Positions 10,101 to 35,145 of a DNA stretch of 53,065 nt are shown piece by piece. Origin of the DNA: Hyphochytrium catenoides (taxonomy: Eukaryota; Protista; Hyphochytriomycota); NCBI GenBank assembly GCA_900088475.1, contig FLMG01003187.1:1-53065 (forward strand), written 5' to 3'. The notes under the pieces were generated by a model. It had not been told where the DNA came from, did not search any database, and saw only the letters and a list, made by a program, of their open reading frames with translations. The position numbers and the translations under genes are program-made. Numbering within the stretch: the first letter of the stretch is position 1; every line of letters starts with the position of its first letter.

Positions 10101-10298
10101 GGCAGAGTGCCGCAGGGTTTGATCTTTCCACATCTCCACCGTCTTCTTGTTGCTCGATTACCTGGGAAGAAGTGTCGCAGGAGACGTTCTTTTTTGCATT
10201 TCGACTCCTGAGATCAATCTTACTTTTTCTTATCAGTAGCCAGTCAACTGTGCTCTTTATCTCTGCTATTGCTCCATCTTTCGGGTGGTTGCAGAGAG

Positions 10299-12860
10299 AT
10301 GAGGTTTACCGCTGTGCTTCGTTCCTTGTGCGTTCTCCCTTTCATCCTAGGCAAGGAGAGCTTTATTGTCTCTGCTGAAGGTGGCAGCGCACAGGAAGTA
10401 AAGCTCTTCACCTTTGGCCCTTTTAGAGTTCAGGTCAACTTCAAGACTAATGATCTTCTCGTCACCACTGTCACCGGTGAAGAGGAGAAAACAGTCCTTC
10501 GTTCTCTGGGCGCCGGCTCTTCCTGGGTGAGAGCTGGGCTCAGCCCATTGAGCGTGGAAGAGTTTGATGGAGGTGTCTTCGAGTTCTCTGACGGCTGTTA
10601 CCCAGATATCTGGATCCCATCGAGGGCTAATCCTAATGCGCCGCGATGGTTCCGTAGACCCGCTCCGCAGCACCGGGACTGCTTTCTTACCTTACAGCAG
10701 ACCATCACCGGTGTGGAGACGTTACCTGAGGAAAAAGAAGGGATTGTTATCAGAGGCTCGCTGCATGGACAGAAAGGGGATAGCCCTTTCACTCTTTCTT
10801 ACTCCTTCGAGCTTTCAACCTCCAGCTTAGCTGGCGAAGCTGCTCCACCACAGCTAGAGTTCAACCTTGAAGCTGACAAAGTAGAGCCACAACAAAGTGA
10901 GATACCCGTGGTAGATCGGCTCGTGTTAACGTTAGGCTTCAGCGATAAAAGAAACGATAACGGAGATCTTTTGGATCAGGAGGCGATCTACGGCTTTGGT
11001 GAACAACCAACAAACATTAACATGCGAGGAAAAGTCTTCCCAACGGTGGTGATGGAGAACGGCATTGGAAGGGGCGATCAACCTATCTCTACCACTGTCA
11101 ACCTGATATCTTCTTCCCCTGCCTCTGGAGCTCACTATTCAACTTATGCCCCTCTACCAGGCTTCATCACCAGTGCTGGCCGCATGCTACTGCTGCACAA
11201 CTCCGAGTACAGCCTCTGGGACCTTACAGAGGACAAGATGGCAATTCACACAGTAGCCTTCCACCCCGACACTCCCGATAAACTAGTAAGACGCTTCCGT
11301 CTTCATGGCCACACTGGAAGCTTCTCTACGCCACTCGGCGCCATTGAAGCTCTCACTGTGCATACAGGGAGACCCCGCCCTCTGCCCAAATGGATCTATA
11401 CCAATGGCGCTGTGATGGGTCTCACAGGAGGATTGAGCGCTGTTACTGAGATCTATGATAACCTTAAGAAGTGGGAGGTGCCTGTCGCTGCGCTGTGGCT
11501 CCAAGACTGGACGGGTTTGCGCTTTGACAGAATTGGGAGTCGACTCTGGTGGAACTGGGAGAGCGACGGCGATCATTACGCTGACTGGCGGGGTTTCAGT
11601 GACAAACTCTTCGAGGAAGGAGTACGTCTGATGTCCTACATCAATCCCTATCTTTCCAATAGTGTGGCAGATAAGAAGAAGAACGCCCAGAGGAATCTCT
11701 TTGAAGAAGCCAGAGAAAGAGGCTTCCTGGTAGAGAAACGGACTGAGAAAGGACTAGAGCCCTACATTCAAACAAGCGGCTCAAAGGAGTTCTCTTACGG
11801 CACGGTAGATCTATTCAATCCTGACGCAGCGGCTTGGTATATGGACGTCATCAGATGCAATGTAATGGGGATCTGTGAATGCGAGCAACAGGGGCAGGAG
11901 AGCTGTCGCCCGACAGTCTATGGCTGGATGGCTGACTTCAGCGAGTCTCTCAGCTTTAATGCTATCACCTACCAGGATAAAGAAGGAAGAGAGAAGGAGG
12001 ACGCTGTGGCCCGGCACAATCACTACGTTGAGGCCTGGCAGAAGCTTAACAAGGAGGCGACAAAAGGCTATGATGACGTTGTCCCTTTCACGAGGGCAGG
12101 ATGGACACGGACACCAGGGCTCACGCGGCTCATGTGGCATGGAGACCAGTTTGTTACCGCTTGGGAAAATGATGGCATGACCAGTGCTCTTCGCTCCTCT
12201 CTCTCTTGCGGCCTCTCCGGCTTGGCACTGACTCACAGCGATGTAGGCGGTTATACGGCTCTTAAGGTTCCGGTGGTTGGAAACCTCCCAGGGTTCAGAA
12301 GCAGCGAGTTGTTTAACATTCAACGCTCAAAGGAGGTGCTTCTTCGTTGGAGTGAGATGTCAGCTTTCTCAGATGTGATTATGAGAACGCATGTTGGCAC
12401 GTCTCCTGAGGAGTCCCATCAAGTTTACACCGATCCAGAGACTGCCATGGCTTTTGCTAGGGCTGTGAGATGGCATCAGGCGCTTAGTAGCTACCGAGAG
12501 CACCTTATAGCCAATGCTGCCCTGCGTGGCCATCCTCTGACCCGCCACCTTGTGCTAGAGTTTCCACAGGATCCTCAAGTAAGGGACCTGAGCCTGCAGT
12601 TTATGGTAGGGTCGTGTCTTCTCGTCGCGCCAGTGCTTTTGGAGGAGGCAAACAGTGTGGACGTCTATCTTCCTGCCAGTAGTTGGAGGCACGTGTGGAC
12701 TGGCAAGGCGTTTGAGAAGAGTGCCGGAGGAGGATGGGAGCAGGTGGAAGCGCCATTGGGTTCTCCTGCTGTTTTTGTGAGAGTTGGATATGTTGATGGG
12801 CCTATCGCTTGTGAGACTGTTGAGGCTTCACTTCTCGCTGTTGCAGTGAAGACGAAGTGA
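10299..12860 (+). CDS. Secreted GH31 glycoside hydrolase, sulfoquinovosidase (YihQ-like) subfamily, copy 1
   Basis: Intronless 853-aa ORF from ATG 10299 with a hydrophobic N-terminus. Motifs: WLQDWTG.R....GSRLWWNW, YINPY, GWMADFSE (nucleophile Asp), WHGDQ (acid/base Asp), HSDVGGYT, MRTH, LLVAPV. Confidence 0.9.
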   Translation: MRFTAVLRSLCVLPFILGKESFIVSAEGGSAQEVKLFTFGPFRVQVNFKTNDLLVTTVTGEEEKTVLRSLGAGSSWVRAGLSPLSVEEFDGGVFEFSDGCYPDIWIPSRANPNAPRWFRRPAPQHRDCFLTLQQTITGVETLPEEKEGIVIRGSLHGQKGDSPFTLSYSFELSTSSLAGEAAPPQLEFNLEADKVEPQQSEIPVVDRLVLTLGFSDKRNDNGDLLDQEAIYGFGEQPTNINMRGKVFPTVVMENGIGRGDQPISTTVNLISSSPASGAHYSTYAPLPGFITSAGRMLLLHNSEYSLWDLTEDKMAIHTVAFHPDTPDKLVRRFRLHGHTGSFSTPLGAIEALTVHTGRPRPLPKWIYTNGAVMGLTGGLSAVTEIYDNLKKWEVPVAALWLQDWTGLRFDRIGSRLWWNWESDGDHYADWRGFSDKLFEEGVRLMSYINPYLSNSVADKKKNAQRNLFEEARERGFLVEKRTEKGLEPYIQTSGSKEFSYGTVDLFNPDAAAWYMDVIRCNVMGICECEQQGQESCRPTVYGWMADFSESLSFNAITYQDKEGREKEDAVARHNHYVEAWQKLNKEATKGYDDVVPFTRAGWTRTPGLTRLMWHGDQFVTAWENDGMTSALRSSLSCGLSGLALTHSDVGGYTALKVPVVGNLPGFRSSELFNIQRSKEVLLRWSEMSAFSDVIMRTHVGTSPEESHQVYTDPETAMAFARAVRWHQALSSYREHLIANAALRGHPLTRHLVLEFPQDPQVRDLSLQFMVGSCLLVAPVLLEEANSVDVYLPASSWRHVWTGKAFEKSAGGGWEQVEAPLGSPAVFVRVGYVDGPIACETVEASLLAVAVKTK

Positions 12861-18633: not shown

Positions 18634-21213
18634 ATGTTGCAGCTGGCTAGGCTCAGTGCAATCTTTACTTTCTTTGTACTTCTCACTAGTCACGGTGATG
18701 CCGGCAGTGCGGCCCTCGCTCCAGATAATGATGGGAAGAAGGTTTTCATTCTTGGCCCTTTTAGAGTCGCAGTCAACATGAATACTATTGACCTTCATGT
18801 CACCACTAGACCTAGAGAAGAAGGAGGAGAGATGACAGTTCTACGCTCTCTTGGCGGCGGGGCGCCCTGGATTAGCGCTGGGTCCAGCCTAATCACTGTG
18901 AAGGAGTTTGATGGAGGTGTCTTTGAGTTCTCTGACGGCTGTTACCCAGACATTTGGATCCCGTCCAAGGCCAATAACAATGGGCCGCGCTGGTTCCGAA
19001 GAGATGCAGATAAGTGTACCTGTGTCCTTACTTCAAACCAAACCATCACATCAGTGGAGACACTGCTGCCCGCAGGAGACAAGAATGAAGGCGTTATCAT
19101 CAGAGGCGCCCTTCAGGGATAGAAGGGACGTAAAGCGTTCGCTCTTTCTTACTCTTTCACACTCTCCTATTCAATCTTAGCTAGCGGGAATGCTCTTCCA
19201 CAGCTAGAGTTCAACCTCGAAGCTGACAAGCTCCCGCCAAAGACAAGTGAAGAGCTACAGGTGGTTGATCGCCTGGTCCTGAGCTTGGGCTTTAGCGACA
19301 AGAAGAACAAGAACGGAGATGTGGTGGATCAGGAGGCGATCTACGGCTTTGGGGAACAGCCAACGAACATTAACATGCGAGGAAAAGTCTTCCCAACGGT
19401 GGTGATGGAGAACGGCATTGGAAGGGGCGATCAACCTATCTCTACCACTGTCAACCTGATATCTTCTTCCCCTGCCTCTGGAGCTCACTATTCAACTTAT
19501 GCCCCTCTACCAGGCTTCATCACCAGTGCTGGCCGCATGCTACTGCTGCATAACTCACGAGTACAGCCTCTGGGACCTTACAGAGGACAAGAGGCAATTC
19601 ACACAGTAGCCTTCCACCCCGACACTCCCGATAAAGTGGTAACACGCTTCCGTCTTCATGGCCACACTGGAAGCTTCTCTACGCCACTCGGCGCCATTGA
19701 AGCTCTCACTGTGCACACAGGGAGACCCCGCCCTCTGCCCAAATGGATCTATACCAATGGCGCTGTGATGGGTCTCACAGGAGGCTTGAGCGCTGTTACT
19801 GAGATCTATGATAACCTTAAGAAGTGGGAGGTGCCTGTCGCTGCGCTGTGGCTTCAAGACTGGACGGGTTTGCGCTTTGACAGGATCGGGAGTCGGCTCT
19901 GGTGGAACTGGGAGAGCGACGGCGATCATTACCCCGACTGGCGAGGCTTCAGTGGCAAACTCTTTGAGGAAGGAGTACGTCTGATGTCCTACATCAATCC
20001 CTATCTTTCCAATAGTGTGGCAGATAAAAAGAAGAACGCCCAGAGAAATCTCTTCGAAGAAGCCAGAGAAAGAGGCTTCCTGGTAGAGAAACGGACTGAG
20101 AAAGGACTGGAGCCTTACATTCAAACAAGCGGCTCAAAGGAGTTCTCTTATGGCACCGTAGATCTATTCAATCCGGACGCAGCGGCTTGGTATATGGACG
20201 TCATCCGATGCAATATGATGGGGATCTGTGAATGCGAGCAACAGAATCCGAAGCAGGAGAGCTGCCGCCCCGTAGTCTATGGCTGGATGGCTGATTTCAG
20301 CGAGTCTCTCGCCTTTGATGCTATCACCTACCAGGATAAAGAAGGAAGAGAGAAGGAGGACGCTGTGGCCCGGCACAATCGCTTTGTTGAGGCCTGGCAG
20401 GAGCTTAACAAGCAGGCCACAAAAGGCTATGATGACGTCGTGCCTTTCACGAGGGCAGGATGGACGCGAACGCCAGGACTCACACGGCTCATGTGGCACG
20501 GAGACCAGTTTGTTACCTTCGGGGAGAACGATGGCATGACCAGTGCTCTTCGCTCCTCTCTCTCGTGCGGACTCTCCGGCTTGGCACTGACCCACAGCGA
20601 TGTAGGCGGTTATACGGCTCTTAAGGTTCCCGTGATTGGGAGTCTCCCAGGGTTCAGGGACAGCAATCTATTCAACATTCAGCGGTCTAAAAAGTTGCTT
20701 CTTCGTTGGAGTGAGATGTCAGCTTTCTTAGATGTGATTATGAGGACGCATGTTGGCACGTCTCCTGAGGAGTCCCATCAGGTTTACACTGATCCAGATA
20801 CTGCTATGGCTTTTGCGAGAGCTGTGAGATGGCACCAGGCGCTTAGTAGCTACCGAGAGCACCTTATAGCCATGGCTGCACAATATGGACATCCCCTGAC
20901 CCGCCACCTTGTGCTAGAGTTTCCACAGGATCCTCAAGTAAGGGACCTGAGCCTGCAGTTTATGGTAGGGTCGTGTCTTCTCGTAGCGCCAGTGCTTTTG
21001 GAGGAGGCAAGGAATGTAGATGTCTATCTTCCTGCCGGCGGTTGGAGGCACGTGTGGACTAGGAAGATGTATGAGAAGAGCTCCGGAGGTTCATGGGAGA
21101 AGGTGGAAGCGCCGTTCGGGTCTCCTGCTGTTTTTGTGAGAGTTGGATATGTTGATGGGCCTATCGCTTGTGAGTCTATCGAGGCTTCACTGCTCGCTGT
21201 GGGAAAGAGGTGA
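18634..21213 (+). pseudogene. GH31 sulfoquinovosidase-like paralog, copy 2, interrupted by one in-frame TAG (pseudogene, read-through or assembly error)
   Basis: ORFs 18634-19122 and 19261-21213 are in the same frame and colinear with copy 1. TAG at 19120-19122 aligns to CAG in copy 1. A +1/-1 indel pair lies at about 19557 and 19592. Signal peptide and catalytic motifs are intact. Confidence 0.8.
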
Positions 21214-27227: not shown

Positions 27228-28409
27228 TTCTTTCTTTTATATGAAAAGACAGGTTGTTCGGTGGTGAAAGTCGGTTTTGCGATGGGCTATGCTAGTCAAC
27301 TTGCTGGAAGGAAGAAGATTAGCTACTGCCAAAGAGGAAGTCGGGCCGGGCCCTACGCAAGGCAAGCACGGGATGCCGCCCGCGACGAGAACAAGGGAAG
27401 TTGACCAAGGCCATTATGAGCTCCATAAGGACCGTCAACTTTAAGGGCCCTGTCAGTATCCTTGTAAGACTCGGCGAAGGAGGGCCGAGTAACGATAGAG
27501 GAAGGAGAATGTTAACAACTTCCTTCCTCTCCGGAACGTGTACTAAGGAGAGGAGAGAGCATTGACTGCTACTATTAGCCTGCTGCTGCTGCTTTGTTTG
27601 TTAGTCCACACTATGAGTGATCAGCTGCTCTTGGTGGGCTTGACAATTATTTTTCCCCGTACTGTTCCCTATGTGGCCAGGATGGCTGTGACGACGATCT
27701 TCGTGCTGCTGCTGCCCTCTTTCTCCTCCTCCGGTCACTCGTCATCACTCTTCTTCCCTGCACACTTCTTCTTGGCGCTGCTGCTTTTCCTCTTCAAGAT
27801 TATCATCCATCCCCGCAGCAGCAGCAGCAGCAGCAGGACGCCGCCCCGCAGTAAGCGACGACAGAGGGCAGCTGTCTCCTCCTCGCTTCAATCATCTTTC
27901 TGCTGATTGCTGCCTCCTAAGCGCCCTCCTCTTCCTTTTCTTCTCTCCTTCTTCTTCTGGCAGTGATGCTGCAAGCAGAAGCTCGTTTGACAGAAGCGAT
28001 CTTTTCTTAGTGCACTGCCCTCCTCTCACCCTTCCCTTCCTTGTCAAGGAGGAAGAGGAGGGAGGTGGTTCTTTTGTCCTTACAGACCCACCCACCTTTT
28101 TTCAGATACAGAACTTATTATGGGGAAATAGGAGGGAGGGGCGTAGAAACTTGCTTTGCGTAGGGGTACTCGTAGAAGTCAGGGGGATGGGTGCGTGTAG
28201 AATTGTAAAAAGAAGCCACTCCATGAGTCTCACGGTCGCGGGGGTTTACTGGATGAAGGGTAGCTTCCCTTCTTTCTGCAGTGTTGCATACTGGCCGTGA
28301 TGATTTAAAATATGAGGCAGTAGAGCAGATACTATCATTCAATTTCGCGATAATGATTCAATATAACTATAGTACCACCATTGTCTAAGGAGTCGTTTCA
28401 GAATGGAAG

Positions 28410-28693
28410 TGAGTGAGAGAAAGAAAGAGGGATAGGGCGCGAAAGAGAGACAGACAGAGAAAGAGAGACAGAGCGTGAAAGAGAGACAGACTGAGAAAGG
28501 AAGACAGACCGAGAATGAACAGACCGAGTAAGAGAGACAGAGCGTGAAAGAGAGGAAGAGAGAGAGAGTGAGAAAGACAGACAGAGAAGAGAGACAGAGG
28601 CTGAGACAGCAAAGAGAGAGAAAGGGAAAATGAACAAGAAAGAGAGACAGAGAAGATTGATACAGAGCAGATAAGAGAAAGGGAAATAGACGG

Positions 28694-28747
<54 letters not shown>
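28410..28747. repeat. GA-rich degenerate microsatellite/minisatellite ending in pure (GA)n
   Basis: Visible AGAGAGACAG-type units and a (GA)n run at about 28705-28747. Confidence 0.9.
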
Positions 28748-28749
<2 letters not shown>

Positions 28750-29333
28750 TCGCAAAAGTACAGTTGATATGAATAGCAAACGGCGGTTTCTTCTTTGCCT
28801 TTCCCTCTCCTTGGATCCTAGCTCTCCGATCCCCTCCTCCTCATCAACAATAGACGGTAAAGAGGAGAGAGAGACGCAGCATGGGTTGATGATGCAAGAG
28901 GATGGCCACAGATGAACGATAAGACTAAGGGCCGTTCCTCATTGCTCCGGCGGCTAGCGATGATGAGGAGCGCCACCAGGAGCAAGCGCGTTGCGTCATG
29001 CCGTACTACCCCTCTCAGGAGGGCCCGCAATGAAGAGTGAAGAGCGCAACAACGAACGTGTTTAGCTCGACTTTTTCTTCCGGACGGTGGTGGCAGGAAG
29101 GACGGATGAAGCGTATGGTGAAGGAAAGCGTCTTGTCAGCTTGCGTGAGCTGGCTTTCGAGGCTCGCTGGCTCATTCGTCGCCACCTCCCTTCAGCCATA
29201 AGCAGTGCTCTTGCTCGTGCTCTCTCAGGTAGAACCTTGTCCTCTTTGTCGAGCAAGCAGGCAGCGGTCGGTGGAGGGTGAGAAGATGCCAACCATCCTT
29301 TTCAACAATATTTAACATCTAGCAAGCAGCACT

Positions 29334-31595
29334 ATGCTGACCTTGGAAAGGCTCTCTGGCCTGAGCGCCAACGAAATTCGGAGCAACATCAAGCTCCAAT
29401 GTGCCGGAGGTACGGGATCTGCAGAGGTCCTGGCCATGCAAGGCGATGCACTGCTATCGATGCACATTCTGCAGATCATCATCAGAAAGTTCCCGTCTTT
29501 GACCACAAGAGAGACCATTCACGCGATGAAGGAACGCTATACCAGCAACGAAAGCCTCGCTTTTATCGCCAAGAAACTAAGAGTCTACGCTCTGATTGAC
29601 CCTCCCGTAGCCGCCAAAGGACAGCCATCTCGCAGGTTCAGTGAGTGGGAGATGGCGACTACTTTGGAGGCCATGATCCAGCTTGTGAACAACGCAAACG
29701 GGTACTCAGCTTCAGAGACTTTCGCTGCTGCCTTGATGGACATCCTGGACAGCTCAACGCTCTCTGAATCGTCTCCTTCTACTAGGGCAATCAGGAGCGA
29801 GAGCATTGGTGCTGGAGGCATTGGCAGTCAAGGTGACAAATCCAAAGAAAGTTCAAAAGCCGCGAGAATCTTCCCTCCTCCAGTGTCAGTGGTGGTGCAA
29901 AAAAGTAAGGATGAGGCCTCTCTTCCTAAGACTGCAACGCCACCAGCGGTCAAAAGTGGAGGCAAAGGGACGAAGAAAAGCCCCAAGTTAGGGCCAACCT
30001 CGACTACCCCGAGGGCAAGCAGCACCGCTCATTCACAAGAGCAAGGCCGTCAAGATGCAAATGGGAAGGCGCGCATTGCACCTACTACCAGCCCCAGTAA
30101 AACCCTTAGTAGTATAGGTAAAAAGGAGTCTCCTACAGCTTTCAAGCAGTCCCACGGGTCCTTAACGGGCAATCCCGGTACCGATCCTAGCCATTCAATG
30201 AAGGGAGAAGCTACACCTCGAAGAGAAAGTGTGACAGCCATTCCATCATTGGAGAAAAAGGAAGGGGAACAGCCAGTTACTCCTGTGAAGCTCTCACCTT
30301 CTGCCTCCCCAACAAAGAAGCAGAATAAAAGGAAGAAGAAAAAGCAAGAGAGAGAAAAGGATGGCCAGCAGGGCGATGTCAAGAAGGAACTGGATAGTAT
30401 GGCGACACCACCGTGCTCCTCTCACCTTTCGGAAGCAGCCATGAAGGCCGAACAGAGGAAAGGAACACTTCCCGTACTTGAGCAAGCAAGCAGTCTCTGT
30501 CCTTCCGGAGGAGCAACAAAGGAACCACGTGATCTAACCTTTACTGGATGTCACCTCATAACGCCGCGTAACTCTCAAAGGGCGTTGTTTGCGCTAATCC
30601 GAGGTCAGCTAGATCGTCTGGGTCCTTTGGAGCTTGACCAGCTTATGGTCGCTCTATGGAAAGAGAGAGGATCTTTTCCTTCCAGCTGTGGTCTTCTCTT
30701 GGAGCCTCAGACCTTACCAAGGGTAAAAGGAGACTACATCGCGAACCTCATCGTTGAAGATATGACCTTACCTACACCGAAGCTTATAACTCTGGCCTCG
30801 TTGCCGGACAATCTGTCCATCCCGTGTCCAGCGTGCAAGATACCGCTAAAGAAGCTAAAGAACGTTATTGAGCACATCAACGAGAGGTGCCCCCGGCGTT
30901 ATGTTAGCTGCGACCAATGTGACTTGCTGATGACTGCTGACTGCATGAACAACCACGATTGTGATGATATCATAGAGTGCAAGGACTGCGGATACAAGGT
31001 AAACAGCACTTTGTGGCATCTCCACCTCAAGCAAGAAGGGCCAATCAAGAGTTATACTAGGCAGGACTGTCAGCACTGTGGACAAATGCAGATGATTGAT
31101 GATGATATTGGCTATGTCACACACCACAACTGCCTCCTCACGTTCATAGTCTACGATATTGTGCCCTACCCAGGACTATCGGCCCAGGAGGCAGCAGACT
31201 TAAGAGCTATCTACATCTTTAGCGAGAGAACGACGTTTGGCTCCTGTGGAGCGTGTCAGCTTGATAACGTGGCTGAACGCCCACCGGTCGCTTACCGCCG
31301 GAAGGAAATGGTTGCACATTGCTGCACTAAGACTGGCCATCATACGCGCTTTCCCCCTGAGATGCCGCTCTGTCCGAGTACCCGAAGCGCATGGTATACT
31401 CCCGAACTGAGTGAACCTACCGCTTCTCAGGAGCCAGCCATGGCCACATCTTCACCACCTGCTACGATTGCTACCCCTACTCTTCCATCTATCGCTCCTA
31501 CACCGGAGGAGGATCTGACGACACAGAGGTTAAACGAGAAATCTACTTCACCATCCACTAGCGGCGCAATAGGAACGGCGTGCAAAGTTCAATGA
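29334..31595 (+). CDS. 753-aa protein: N-terminal Mini-III-like RNase III domain, S/P/K-rich linker with basic NLS-like tract, C-terminal TRAF/C2H2-like Zn fingers
   Basis: EVLAMQGDALL..I...FP......SNESLAFIAKKL...ATTLEAMI mirrors the RNase III signature ERLEFLGDAVL...N..LA..A..L...AD.FEA.I. Linker contains KKQNKRKKKK. Zn-finger region: CPAC...EHINERCPRRYVSCDQC...HDC..IECKDC...HLH. Confidence 0.75.
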   Translation: MLTLERLSGLSANEIRSNIKLQCAGGTGSAEVLAMQGDALLSMHILQIIIRKFPSLTTRETIHAMKERYTSNESLAFIAKKLRVYALIDPPVAAKGQPSRRFSEWEMATTLEAMIQLVNNANGYSASETFAAALMDILDSSTLSESSPSTRAIRSESIGAGGIGSQGDKSKESSKAARIFPPPVSVVVQKSKDEASLPKTATPPAVKSGGKGTKKSPKLGPTSTTPRASSTAHSQEQGRQDANGKARIAPTTSPSKTLSSIGKKESPTAFKQSHGSLTGNPGTDPSHSMKGEATPRRESVTAIPSLEKKEGEQPVTPVKLSPSASPTKKQNKRKKKKQEREKDGQQGDVKKELDSMATPPCSSHLSEAAMKAEQRKGTLPVLEQASSLCPSGGATKEPRDLTFTGCHLITPRNSQRALFALIRGQLDRLGPLELDQLMVALWKERGSFPSSCGLLLEPQTLPRVKGDYIANLIVEDMTLPTPKLITLASLPDNLSIPCPACKIPLKKLKNVIEHINERCPRRYVSCDQCDLLMTADCMNNHDCDDIIECKDCGYKVNSTLWHLHLKQEGPIKSYTRQDCQHCGQMQMIDDDIGYVTHHNCLLTFIVYDIVPYPGLSAQEAADLRAIYIFSERTTFGSCGACQLDNVAERPPVAYRRKEMVAHCCTKTGHHTRFPPEMPLCPSTRSAWYTPELSEPTASQEPAMATSSPPATIATPTLPSIAPTPEEDLTTQRLNEKSTSPSTSGAIGTACKVQ

Positions 31596-32164: not shown

Positions 32165-32840
32165 TCATTAAACAGAAGGATTATCTGACGGCTTCCAATG
32201 CTTGCCCACCAGATCGACTTCCTCCTTCCTTTGATTTGAGAGTCTTCTGTCGGTGGACGGTCGACATATGTGGCGGCGGGCTTTATCAACATCATCTTGC
32301 TCAGCCCAAGCCGATCGAACGGTCGCAGCTGAGCCCGATGTCAACTATTTTAGATACCGTTTGATCACGGCTAAGCTCCCTAACTCTGCACGAGGCGGCG
32401 GCCCGAATGATTGTATCCCGGTTGGCCCCTCCTGCTGCGCCGCACCCTTTCTTGCTGCTTCCACTTTTCTCCGCTCTCTTAGAATTCTTCCTTTCTTTCT
32501 TCTTTCTCCTCTGTCTTCTCTTCAAGCCACGGCCGCCCCGGTTCCTGTTCCTCCTCCAGTTGTCGTTCAAGAGGGAAATCAAGAATCCTCTCTCTCTCGC
32601 ATTATCGGTTATGAGGATGAGTTCTCCGCTTCCTTCTCGGTGTCCCCGCAGCTCCTGCCGCTTCCTGTCGATCCTCCCCGGCCGCCCTTAGTGGCCGGGC
32701 GATTGAGCTCCCTGATGCTTCCTTCCTCTTTTTTTCTCTTTCTGACCTGCTCCTTTTCTCTCTTGTTCTAATTGTAAGCAGTAGTCTACTAGTCACTCCC
32801 TAATATGACAAGAATAAAGCGAAAGAGAGCTCCCTGCCAT
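32165..32840 (+). mobile_element. Decayed 3' end (RLE tail plus 3' UTR) of a CRE-like non-LTR retrotransposon, family A
   Basis: Frame-hopping translation gives KQKDYL...PLI*ESSVGG...SAQADRTVAAE...SRLSSLTLHEAAARMIVSR. The segment is homologous to the reverse complement of 34705-35145. Confidence 0.55.
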
Positions 32841-33652
32841 AGAGAACGGCAGAGGTCTTCGGCGAGTCAGCTCTCTCATGCCTTACCGCGTAAAGGCTGC
32901 TTCTTGTTGGGGCCTATAATAAGATCAGGGCCTGGTATTGAAGCCCCGTGCTAGCGAGCTCTTTCCTGCTGGCACCAGTTCTCTCCTCCTTCTTTTCAAA
33001 GAAGCTGGTGTAGGATAAACAGGAGGATGAACACGGTACACTTTCCTTATCCCTGCTAAAAATCTAAAAGCCTAGACATCCGACGGTCAGTTGGCGCTCT
33101 CATAGATGGGAACGAGTTGGCTATCTTAGCGCGTGATTGACCGGCCAATGATATCTTCACGGAGCTTCTAGTGAAAGAAACGCAGATAGATAACGGGATA
33201 GAAGATGGCCTTCTCCACAGACAACTTCGGCAAGAAGACAAGCCAGCTAGCGCATAACCAAGCAGCTCCGTAGTTGTTTCGACACGACGAGAGCTATTAT
33301 TGAGCAAGCAAGAGTTTTTTCTTAGATAGTTCTCGACTCTACCTCTTCGGCTACGGTTCAACCAATGATAGAAGCGCTAGATCAGAGGTCTGTGCTCAAT
33401 AGACTCAGAAGAAAGAAGACGTCCAAAAGCATTTGACAAGAGTCTTCAGTACTGCTCACGTCTCACAGCAACCAATGTAAGACATCTTCTGGTCGGTGAA
33501 CTTTATTTGTTGACGACCCTCTTCTGGCTTTCCTTGAGAAGGGCGATTGCCCTACCTCTCGCTTCAGTCTCATGTGCTACCCTTCAGGAGCTTCCACAGC
33601 GTCTCTGATTTTACTCACTGAACAGCTGGAGAAGTAACACGCTCTCTCCTCT

Positions 33653-33844
33653 TTAAGCTCTCTCGTTTCTCTTCCTGCCGCCAGCGTCTATTTCAGGGCT
33701 TCCTCCTGTGTCCGCGTACTTTGCCATCGTGTGGTACGTCATCACGCCAACAGCAAAACTAGTGACGGCAATAAGAGGCCAGGTAGCTCTGTCACTTGCG
33801 AGCCACATTCTCATGGTTTGGCGAGTGGTTGGAGTCAAGCCCAT
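33653..33844 (-). CDS. NDUFA4/B12D (MLRQ)-like single-TM mitochondrial micro-protein (63 aa)
   Basis: WLASDRATWPLIAVTSFAVG followed by a TM segment and SPEI...KR. The layout matches this family. Confidence 0.55.
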   Translation of the reverse strand: MGLTPTTRQTMRMWLASDRATWPLIAVTSFAVGVMTYHTMAKYADTGGSPEIDAGGRKRNERA

Positions 33845-34704
33845 GTTATCCTTACTTTTGGAAGGTGGTGCTAGGCGATCCGGTACTTCTTTCTGGCAGG
33901 TTGTGGCTCAAATGAGTCAAAATGGGAAGTGAACGACGCCTACATGCAGCATGGCAGCAGAGTCTTCAGTAGACAGTAGCGGGCATTATCAGCGTAGTCC
34001 TTCAGCAGACTCGTGGCGTGGTGTTCCTATCTGGACCAAGGTGTGGAAGGACATCTTCCGTATGAAGGAGAGATAATAAGTCGACTCAAGGTGGAAGAAA
34101 AAGAGCAAGGACAGGAGGAGGACACGCAGCTGCTTCCTTCCTTCATCTGCTAGTTCAAAAGGACAGATGGGAATTATTGGGGACTGAGAAACCCCACATC
34201 CTCCACCAGGAAGAGCGCAGCCAACAAGCAACCACCAGGAACGTGGCGTACTACGAAGGCCTCACAGGCTGCTAATGCGAGTAGAGGCCCGGCCACCAGG
34301 AGAGCCAAGCAGAGAGGAGATCAGGCGCAGGAGGCCGAGGACGATGAAACTCTCCCTCCTACTATGGACAGGAGTCAACAACTTGTCTCGAGAAACTCTT
34401 CCCTAGTTCTGCTTGGACAGAAAAGGAAATCTTCTTCTCCTCCTCCTTCCTGCTGGCAGTACAGAGAGTCGACACCTCCTTCTCTTCTTCTCTTCCCTGC
34501 CTTTCCCTGCCCCTGTTCCCGATGCTTTGTCCCTGCTGCTGCTGTCGTTGGAGGAGGTTCCCCGTTCTTCTCTCAGGCCAGACAGAATAGACCGGCCGAC
34601 GGGCGATAGACAGGAAGAACGAGGGTTATGTGGCCGCCTCTCCATACTGTTGTTTCCTTCTCTTCCTTCCTTCCTCCCTTGGCGTCTTGCAGAGAAGAAT
34701 GTCT

Positions 34705-35145
34705 TGCGGTCAGGTGAGCTCCTTGCAACCAGTCTCAGGTCATATTCTTTTATTTCTTCGGATTTGTTGTAGACTACTGTTTTATACAAGGAGAAGATGT
34801 GAAAAAATGTACAACGACCAAGAAGAACAAGAGCAAAAACTACTAGTAGGCCAGAAAAAAAGAAAGGAAACGAGGAAGAAAGCAGCTCCATCAGCACCCG
34901 ATCACCAAGGGCGGCGGCCGGGGAGGATGTTGGGCAGGAAGCGAGAGCTGCGGGGACACTGAGGAGGACGCGGGGAGATCATCGTCCTCACCATAAATCT
35001 AAATAAAAAAAGAAGTGGCGCCTGCCTGCTGGTCTACTAAAGGGATAGTCGTGCCTATCGCGCTCAGCTGCCACCGTTCGATCGGCTTGGGCTGCACACA
35101 TGATGTTGATACAGCGAGCCACAGAGGCCGACCCTCGCTCCACCA
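34705..35145 (-). mobile_element. Second, inverted and internally deleted copy of the family A retroelement fragment
   Basis: CTCAGCTGCCACCGTTCGATCGGCTTGGGCTG (about 35064) and GGCCGGGGAGGAT...GAGCTGCGGGGACAC (about 34916-34959) match reverse complements at about 32303-32334 and 32640-32684. Confidence 0.6.

Follow-up and report, generated by a model that had tools for sequence, protein, structure and literature searches.

A stretch of 53,065 nucleotides (nt) of Hyphochytrium catenoides (contig FLMG01003187.1, positions 1 to 53,065), referred to here as the window, carries on its forward strand a gene whose product joins an N-terminal RNase III nuclease domain, across a long low-complexity linker, to zinc fingers of the TRAF type. 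RNase III classes are set by the companion of the nuclease domain, which decides the RNAs that are cut, and a conserved combination of this domain with zinc fingers of the TRAF type has so far gone undescribed. The protein thereby represents a rare RNase III architecture rather than a new enzyme principle.

In the list of open reading frames (ORFs), the gene appears as one uninterrupted frame on the forward strand (Table 1), and the single intronless ORF proposed in an earlier reading made from the letters alone (the sequence-only reading) is indeed present. Assuming three stops per 64 codons, a frame of 753 codons would stay open by chance with a probability of ~2e-16, and the 260 codons of the linker with a probability of ~4e-6, which is improbable enough to argue that the linker is coding and not an overlooked intron. 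A stop in the same frame lies 18 nt 5' of the ATG, and in BLASTP the N-terminus of the ORF pairs with that of an environmental relative (P0001, see below) from residue 3 of the latter onward. The ATG is therefore probably the true start, since the first residues of both proteins align, and no room is left for a targeting peptide. The GC content of the ORF, overall and at third codon positions (GC3), resembles that of adjacent genes. The stretch was also compared with contigs of three DNA runs that belong to a single study. These contigs show zero differences, although the assembly itself may derive from those runs, so that the agreement is not independent. The locus is an intact, single-exon protist gene for a protein of the RNase III superfamily.

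The family to which the protein belongs is very rare. An exhaustive phmmer search of 1.84 billion representative proteins returned six matches at E<=1e-3, five of which (P0001-P0005, all from environmental eukaryote-like contigs) carry an RNase III-like domain with 31-32% identity to that of the window protein, while the sixth (P0006) is a TRAF-finger protein.

Table 1. Position and basis of the parts of the gene within the window
Feature	Residues (aa)	Position (nt)	Strand	Basis or remarks
Whole gene		29334..31595	+	Single ORF, 753 codons + stop, no visible intron
RNase III nuclease domain	1-145	29334..29768	+	Pfam PF00636, alignments, AlphaFold, VIA-align, Foldseek, ESM Atlas
Low-complexity linker, S/K/P/T-rich, also A and G	~146-405	29769..30548	+	Composition, no Pfam match
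Region with two predicted helices (aa ~412-445)	~406-494	30549..30815	+	pLDDT 30-47, no Pfam match
Two TRAF-type zinc fingers	~495-544	30816..30965	+	phmmer, BLASTP, alignment, profile, model
Further Cys/His units	~545-680	30966..31373	+	Cys/His positions, model
C-terminal tail, T/P/S/A-rich, probably disordered	~681-753	31374..31592	+	Composition, pLDDT <40

The RNase III domain and its active site

The nuclease domain was recognized by Pfam (PF00636, Ribonuclease_3) at aa 31-115, where the score of 40.7 bits exceeds the cut-off of 27 (E 4.4e-10). For aa 1-150, an AlphaFold model based on an alignment of 30 sequences reached a mean predicted local distance difference test (pLDDT) score of 93.4, and all of the 50 best Foldseek matches to this model in the PDB are RNase III domains, so that the RNase III fold which the sequence-only reading had assigned to aa ~31-118 is borne out. 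In VIA-align, the nuclease domain of Campylobacter RNase III (3o2r) was matched with Z 16.5 over 136 of 144 residues (root-mean-square deviation 2.6), followed by the RNase III enzymes of M. tuberculosis and E. coli (Z 15) and by plant RTL4 and the mitoribosomal protein mL44 (both Z 14.6). Entamoeba EhRNaseIII, plant RTL4 and budding-yeast Dcr1 are among the structural matches found by Foldseek and VIA-align, and the core of the fungal ribonuclease R3B2 (6zdw) appears in the Foldseek list with a template modelling (TM) score of 0.52. In the model, helices α5 and α6 are joined by a long coil of 16 residues (aa 88-103). Judged by sequence and predicted structure together, aa 1-145 form a genuine RNase III domain of canonical, class-1-like shape.

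The domain occurs once in the chain, in which Pfam recognized nothing else, and no second copy of it was found within the window. A Pfam scan of the 753-aa protein at E<=10 gave no match to a double-stranded RNA-binding domain (dsRBD; dsrm), to PAZ or to a helicase, in agreement with the absence of these domains noted earlier from the letters. The sole NCBIfam match is to classical RNase III and lies below threshold, and a weak Pfam match to RM44_endonuclease was also obtained.

In an alignment with 24 bacterial RNase III proteins, G37, D38 and E112 are the sole invariant positions, the codons of D38 and E112 being located at 29445 and 29667, respectively. Using E. coli numbering, which was read from the NERLEFLGD and DxxE motifs and from a published residue list (PMC8708148), the E. 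coli residues E38, E41, F42, G44, D45, D114 and E117 correspond to E31, A34, M35, G37, D38, T109 and E112. Thus, E31, G37, D38 and E112 are kept, with D38 and E112 in the catalytic positions of D45 and E117, as had been proposed, whereas E41 is swapped for A34, which aligns with the second E of NERLEFLGD, and D114 for T109, which aligns with the D of DxxE. The alignment thereby corroborates the replacements of the LA..GDA and AT..EA type that had been read from the sequence. The complete set of four catalytic carboxylates (E41, D45, D114 and E117) is not present, and both swaps are invariant in the family. M35 occupies the 'ball' position of E. coli F42.

The consequences of such replacements are known from mutants of E. 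coli RNase III, in which E41A and D114A are weakly active, D45A retains a low activity in vitro but is inactive in vivo, E117A/Q/K abolish activity altogether, and F42M is tolerated in vivo (PMC8708148). Across the six family members, which share 25-32% identity, G25, G26, A34, G37, D38, S103, T109 and E112 are invariant, and the persistence of these eight residues at such low identity points to selection acting on the active site.

The same pair of replacements was observed in P0023, an NCBI-sourced protein of 148 aa that is a short RNase III without dsRBD, in which E41 is represented by Ala (motif SLALLGDA) and D114 by Thr (motif LATAFEA). As P0023 likewise lacks a dsRBD, the Ala/Thr pair may arise repeatedly when the dsRBD is lost.

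Relation to known RNase III classes

The sequence-only reading had called the nuclease domain Mini-III-like, a description that survives for one active-site position and fails for kinship. A profile of the six-member family matched classical RNase III at 4e-11 and Drosha RIIIDb at 1e-10, and the Mini-III of B. cereus (1u61) at 1.4e-5. The fold gives the same order, with Foldseek TM scores of 0.65-0.69 for class-1 enzymes versus 0.50-0.55 for Mini-III (1u61, 4oun, 6tnn), and with ESM Atlas TM scores of 0.71-0.75 over 129-139 residues for canonical clusters versus 0.56 over 102 residues for the Mini-ribonuclease 3 cluster; Mini-III entries are absent among the 50 best VIA-align matches. What the two have in common is Thr at the D114 position, as the second motif of 1u61 reads STAFEALIG and that of the family xTxxEA. 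The comparison with 1u61 covered this second motif; the first Mini-III motif is taken to be LAxxGD, with Ala at the E41 position. Mini-III consists of the catalytic domain alone (PMC4357697, PMC5141509) and has an extra helix, α5b, and a short loop in place of the long α5-α6 loop, without an additional domain (PMC4357697); it is active as a homodimer, with ribosomal protein L3 as a helper, and the E106Q mutation inactivates it (PMC5141509). Helix α5b was not found in the predicted structure of the window protein, in which the coil at aa 88-103 takes its place. Because its sequence and fold are nearer to classical RNase III, and because it lacks α5b and carries extra domains, the protein is, on sequence and model, not a Mini-III enzyme, and the confirmed sharing is confined to the T-for-D swap.

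The nuclease domain of class-1 bacterial RNase III (Rnc) provides the best match in both sequence and structure: the helices follow one another in the same order, a long loop joins α5 to α6, and the signature residues GD and EA are shared. Unlike Rnc, the window protein is eukaryotic, has Ala and Thr in place of E41 and D114, and carries 600 extra residues with zinc fingers; in class-1 enzymes such as Rnc and Rnt1 the RNase III domain is followed by a dsRBD, whereas none was detected here. Mini-III (MrnC of B. subtilis, 1u61 of B. cereus, RNC3/RNC4 of plants) likewise lacks a dsRBD and has Thr at D114; however, it is a lone catalytic domain of ~140 aa with α5b, in contrast to the canonical long loop and the extra domains found here. 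As Mini-III needs L3, the window protein would by analogy probably need help in substrate binding from another module. The nearest relative by shape is hence class-1 bacterial RNase III, and by active-site chemistry Mini-III.

Among eukaryotic enzymes, Dicer and Drosha have two RNase III domains per chain together with PAZ, helicase or dsRBD, whereas the window protein has a single one and none of these companions. Entamoeba EhRNaseIII, plant RTL4 and budding-yeast Dcr1 likewise possess one RNase III domain without PAZ or helicase, but, unlike the protein described here, none of them is reported with TRAF fingers. The nearest architecture is that of the trypanosome proteins KREN1-3 and mRPN1, in which a eukaryotic RNase III domain is combined with a zinc finger (PMC8708148). 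These mitochondrial proteins carry C2H2 fingers, whereas here the fingers are of the TRAF type and C-terminal and there is no presequence, and a sequence relation to KREN1-3 or mRPN1 was not detected in the phmmer search. A literature search found no paper that combines 'RNase III domain' and 'TRAF-type zinc finger'.

Zinc fingers, linker and recurrence of the fusion

Fingers homologous to the TRAF type were identified from sequence at aa 498-543, with the predicted zinc ligands C498/C501/H514/C519 and C526/C529/H541/C543. The finger region matched TRAF6 in phmmer (E 0.003) and the finger of P0001 in BLASTP (E 1e-8, 37% identity), and each of the eight ligands is conserved without exception when these fingers are aligned to those of P0001 and P0006. 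P0006 is a zf-TRAF (E 1e-12) plus RING protein, whose repeats match the fingers of the window protein. When a profile of the finger alignment was compared with the solved structures of the PDB, TRAF6 and TRAF4 were the only matches (E 8e-5). Of the TRAF/C2H2-like array that had been read from the letters, the TRAF-type assignment consequently stands for aa 498-543. Pfam zf-TRAF itself gave no match at E<=10 on the 753-aa protein.

A model of the C-terminal part is confident for aa ~489-566 only (pLDDT <50 elsewhere) and contains three ββα units at aa ~495-566 with pLDDT 78-93 (89-93 for the first two fingers). The best structural match to this confident part is a finger of TRAF4 (2eod), with a weak Z of 4.4, and protein language-model features in the Protein Atlas matched the fingers of CEP104, TRAFD1 and XAF1. 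The fingers of TRAF6, TRAF4, TRAFD1/XAF1 and CEP104 share with the window protein the pattern C-x2-C-x12-H-x4-C plus C-x2-C-x11-H-x-C and the ββα units. However, TRAF proteins combine these with RING, a coiled coil and a MATH domain, none of which is present here (RING and MATH were not detected by Pfam), and hence the window protein is not a TRAF protein. The third ββα finger (C549/C552/H562/H564) is the sole confidently modelled unit within aa ~545-680, and C579/C582/H597/C600 and C638/C641 with a cluster at H662-H670 are candidates for further Cys/His units. For aa ~545-680, neither the phmmer search nor Pfam returned a homologue.

The long disordered linker with a basic tract described in the sequence-only reading is recovered in the composition of aa 141-420, which is 15% S, 12% K, 10% P and 9% T, and in a KRKKKK tract at about aa 328-342 (nt ~30315-30359), which is a possible nuclear localisation signal.

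In P0001 (208 aa), the RNase III domain is followed directly, without a linker, by one TRAF-type double finger. The contig of P0001 has a GC content of 43%, compared with 50% for the window, and P0001 is therefore from a different organism. This independent fusion is the best evidence, at the level of sequence, that RNase III and TRAF fingers work together, as its recurrence suggests that the two domains are linked functionally. A pattern scan of the relatives' contigs located TRAF-type fingers beside an RNase III domain in P0001 only, and a tblastn search of these contigs with the C-terminal region of the window protein gave no match. Profile word searches with the domain alignment returned P0001, P0003 and ordinary bacterial RNase III only, and a search for longer fusions that used a long first sequence returned P0005 and P0001 only. 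No match was obtained in a word-index search with the whole 753-aa protein, and a two-sequence alignment, when run against metagenome and viral contigs, retrieved no relative.

At the P0002 locus (L009, 850-2401), an S/T/P/G-rich ORF lies downstream of the RNase III-like ORF on the same strand and exits the contig; from its composition it may be a linker like that of the window protein, which gene calling or an intron would have separated from the RNase III-like ORF. A motif PP[FL][TA]CG[DT]P occurs right after the RNase III domain in P0002 (aa ~205-215) and P0004 (aa ~218-228) and is missing in the window protein and in P0001. The neighbours of P0001 include an IBR (RBR-type E3 ligase) domain protein (L001, 6117-7145, minus strand) and another protein with weak ankyrin matches, the contig being eukaryote-like or giant-virus-like.

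Possible roles and genomic surroundings

Of the roles that can be proposed for the protein, we lean, with moderate confidence, towards that of an active, finger-guided, predicted double-stranded RNA (dsRNA) endonuclease that works as a dimer. In this mechanism, the nuclease domain would dimerise and thereby form the cleft for dsRNA, as is to be expected because dimerisation is common to all RNase III domains, and M35 at the ball position would be compatible with a dimer, as F42M works in E. coli. The metal would be held by D38 and E112, with E31, in a reduced, two-carboxylate active site, and metal-dependent cleavage of dsRNA would occur despite A34 and T109, as Mini-III is active with the same T-for-D swap. 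The zinc fingers would substitute for the dsRBD and bind double-stranded nucleic acid directly or, alternatively, would tether the nuclease to a partner, be it a protein or a complex, from which it receives its substrate. The site of action would be the cytosol or the nucleus, because a transit peptide is missing and the lysine-rich tract makes the nucleus plausible. The sequence-only reading had proposed a nuclear enzyme that would be targeted by its fingers and may serve in RNA processing or defence.

Several observations weigh against this proposal. With two of the four classical catalytic carboxylates gone, activity could be weak or absent, and the equivalents of E. coli E65 and E100 are not retained either. 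None of the RNA runs searched contains the stretch. The candidate nuclear signal consists of the basic tract only, and for aa 406-494 and for the residues beyond 566 homologues were not found and the models are poor. TRAF-type fingers, moreover, are best known as protein-protein modules, and binding of nucleic acids by them is barely documented. In one study, pull-downs with poly(I:C) and poly(dA:dT) recovered TRAFD1, a protein with TRAF fingers (PMC11985509), which by analogy offers thin backing for a nucleic-acid role of the fingers.

The replaced acids A34 and T109 and the missing E65 and E100 equivalents would also fit a pseudo-nuclease, that is, a weak or dead domain which serves as a dsRNA-binding or dimerisation scaffold, or as the non-cutting partner of a catalytic paralogue. 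Precedents for such proteins are mitoribosomal mL44 and mL57, as well as the degenerate RNase III proteins that pair with the editing endonucleases of trypanosomes, and mL44 is nearly as close to the model as the enzymes are (Z 14.6; TM 0.75), in line with the weak RM44_endonuclease match in Pfam. We nevertheless consider a pseudo-nuclease possible but rather doubtful, as D38 and E112, which are the most critical residues in E. coli, are invariant in a family of 25-32% identity, and Mini-III functions with the same Thr replacement. A role like that of mL44 is further opposed by the domain beginning at residue 2, without a mitochondrial presequence; a mitoribosomal protein of the mL44 type was accordingly rejected, as there is no presequence and the catalytic pair is kept.

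An atypical RNase III that cuts single-stranded RNA (ssRNA) or nicks one strand, with the fingers choosing the transcripts, appears improbable to us. Its model would be R3B2, a fungal enzyme of a non-canonical RNA interference pathway, and both the presence of the R3B2 core (6zdw) among the Foldseek matches and the non-canonical active site would suit it; yet this match is far weaker than those to the classical enzymes, and the sequence holds no specific pointer to single-stranded substrates.

Lower still in our estimation is a non-functional locus, be it a gene copy in decay, the passenger of a transposon or an artefact of the assembly. Such an origin would account for the RNA runs without the stretch and for the repeats and the possible terminal inverted repeat (TIR) element nearby, but it is hard to reconcile with 753 open codons, including the 260 codons of the linker, with the intact family-invariant residues, and with a composition like that of the host genes and DNA contigs that agree. 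Finally, we give next to no credence to a true Mini-III orthologue that descends from bacterial or plastid MrnC and matures organellar rRNA, as Thr at the D114 position and the lack of a dsRBD are outweighed by a profile and fold nearer to class-1, the missing α5b, 600 extra residues including the fingers, and the lack of a transit peptide.

If the fingers of the proposed dsRNA endonuclease bind dsRNA, they would represent a new RNA-recognition use of a fold known mainly from immune signalling adaptors, and if they bind proteins, the nuclease would be recruited by a signalling-type module. With two of its four acids gone, the active site is a natural case, in a eukaryote, in which to ask how much of the RNase III catalytic centre can be dispensed with, and a family with five known relatives would escape routine annotation. 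It is a speculative and, in our view, unlikely extension that these proteins form a separate eukaryotic RNase III class, in which TRAF fingers read double-stranded nucleic acid or plug into a signalling scaffold; if true, the protein would act in the innate defence of protists as a dsRNA nuclease coupled to signalling.

In the surroundings of the gene, an inverted repeat of 38 nt (95% complementary) has its arms at 32302-32339 and 35057-35094, with 2.7 kb between them, and encloses an inner inverted pair of 80 nt at 75% (32607-32686 and 34913-34992), so that an element bounded by TIRs may occupy 32302-35094, a short way downstream of the gene. The possibility that the gene itself is transposon-borne was rejected, as the ORF has no flanking repeats of its own. 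GA-rich repeats with an 18-nt period and a (GA)n run are located at 28396-28778, ~550 nt upstream of the start codon, and give rise, when read from the minus strand, to a spurious ORF of 146 aa with many Ser, Leu, Phe and Cys residues. Further away, two paralogous ORFs for GH31 glycoside hydrolases (10269-12860 and 19261-21213) lie ~9 kb apart on the same strand, and an 808-aa ORF at 1439-3865 matches a GATA-type zinc finger with E 1.9e-6.

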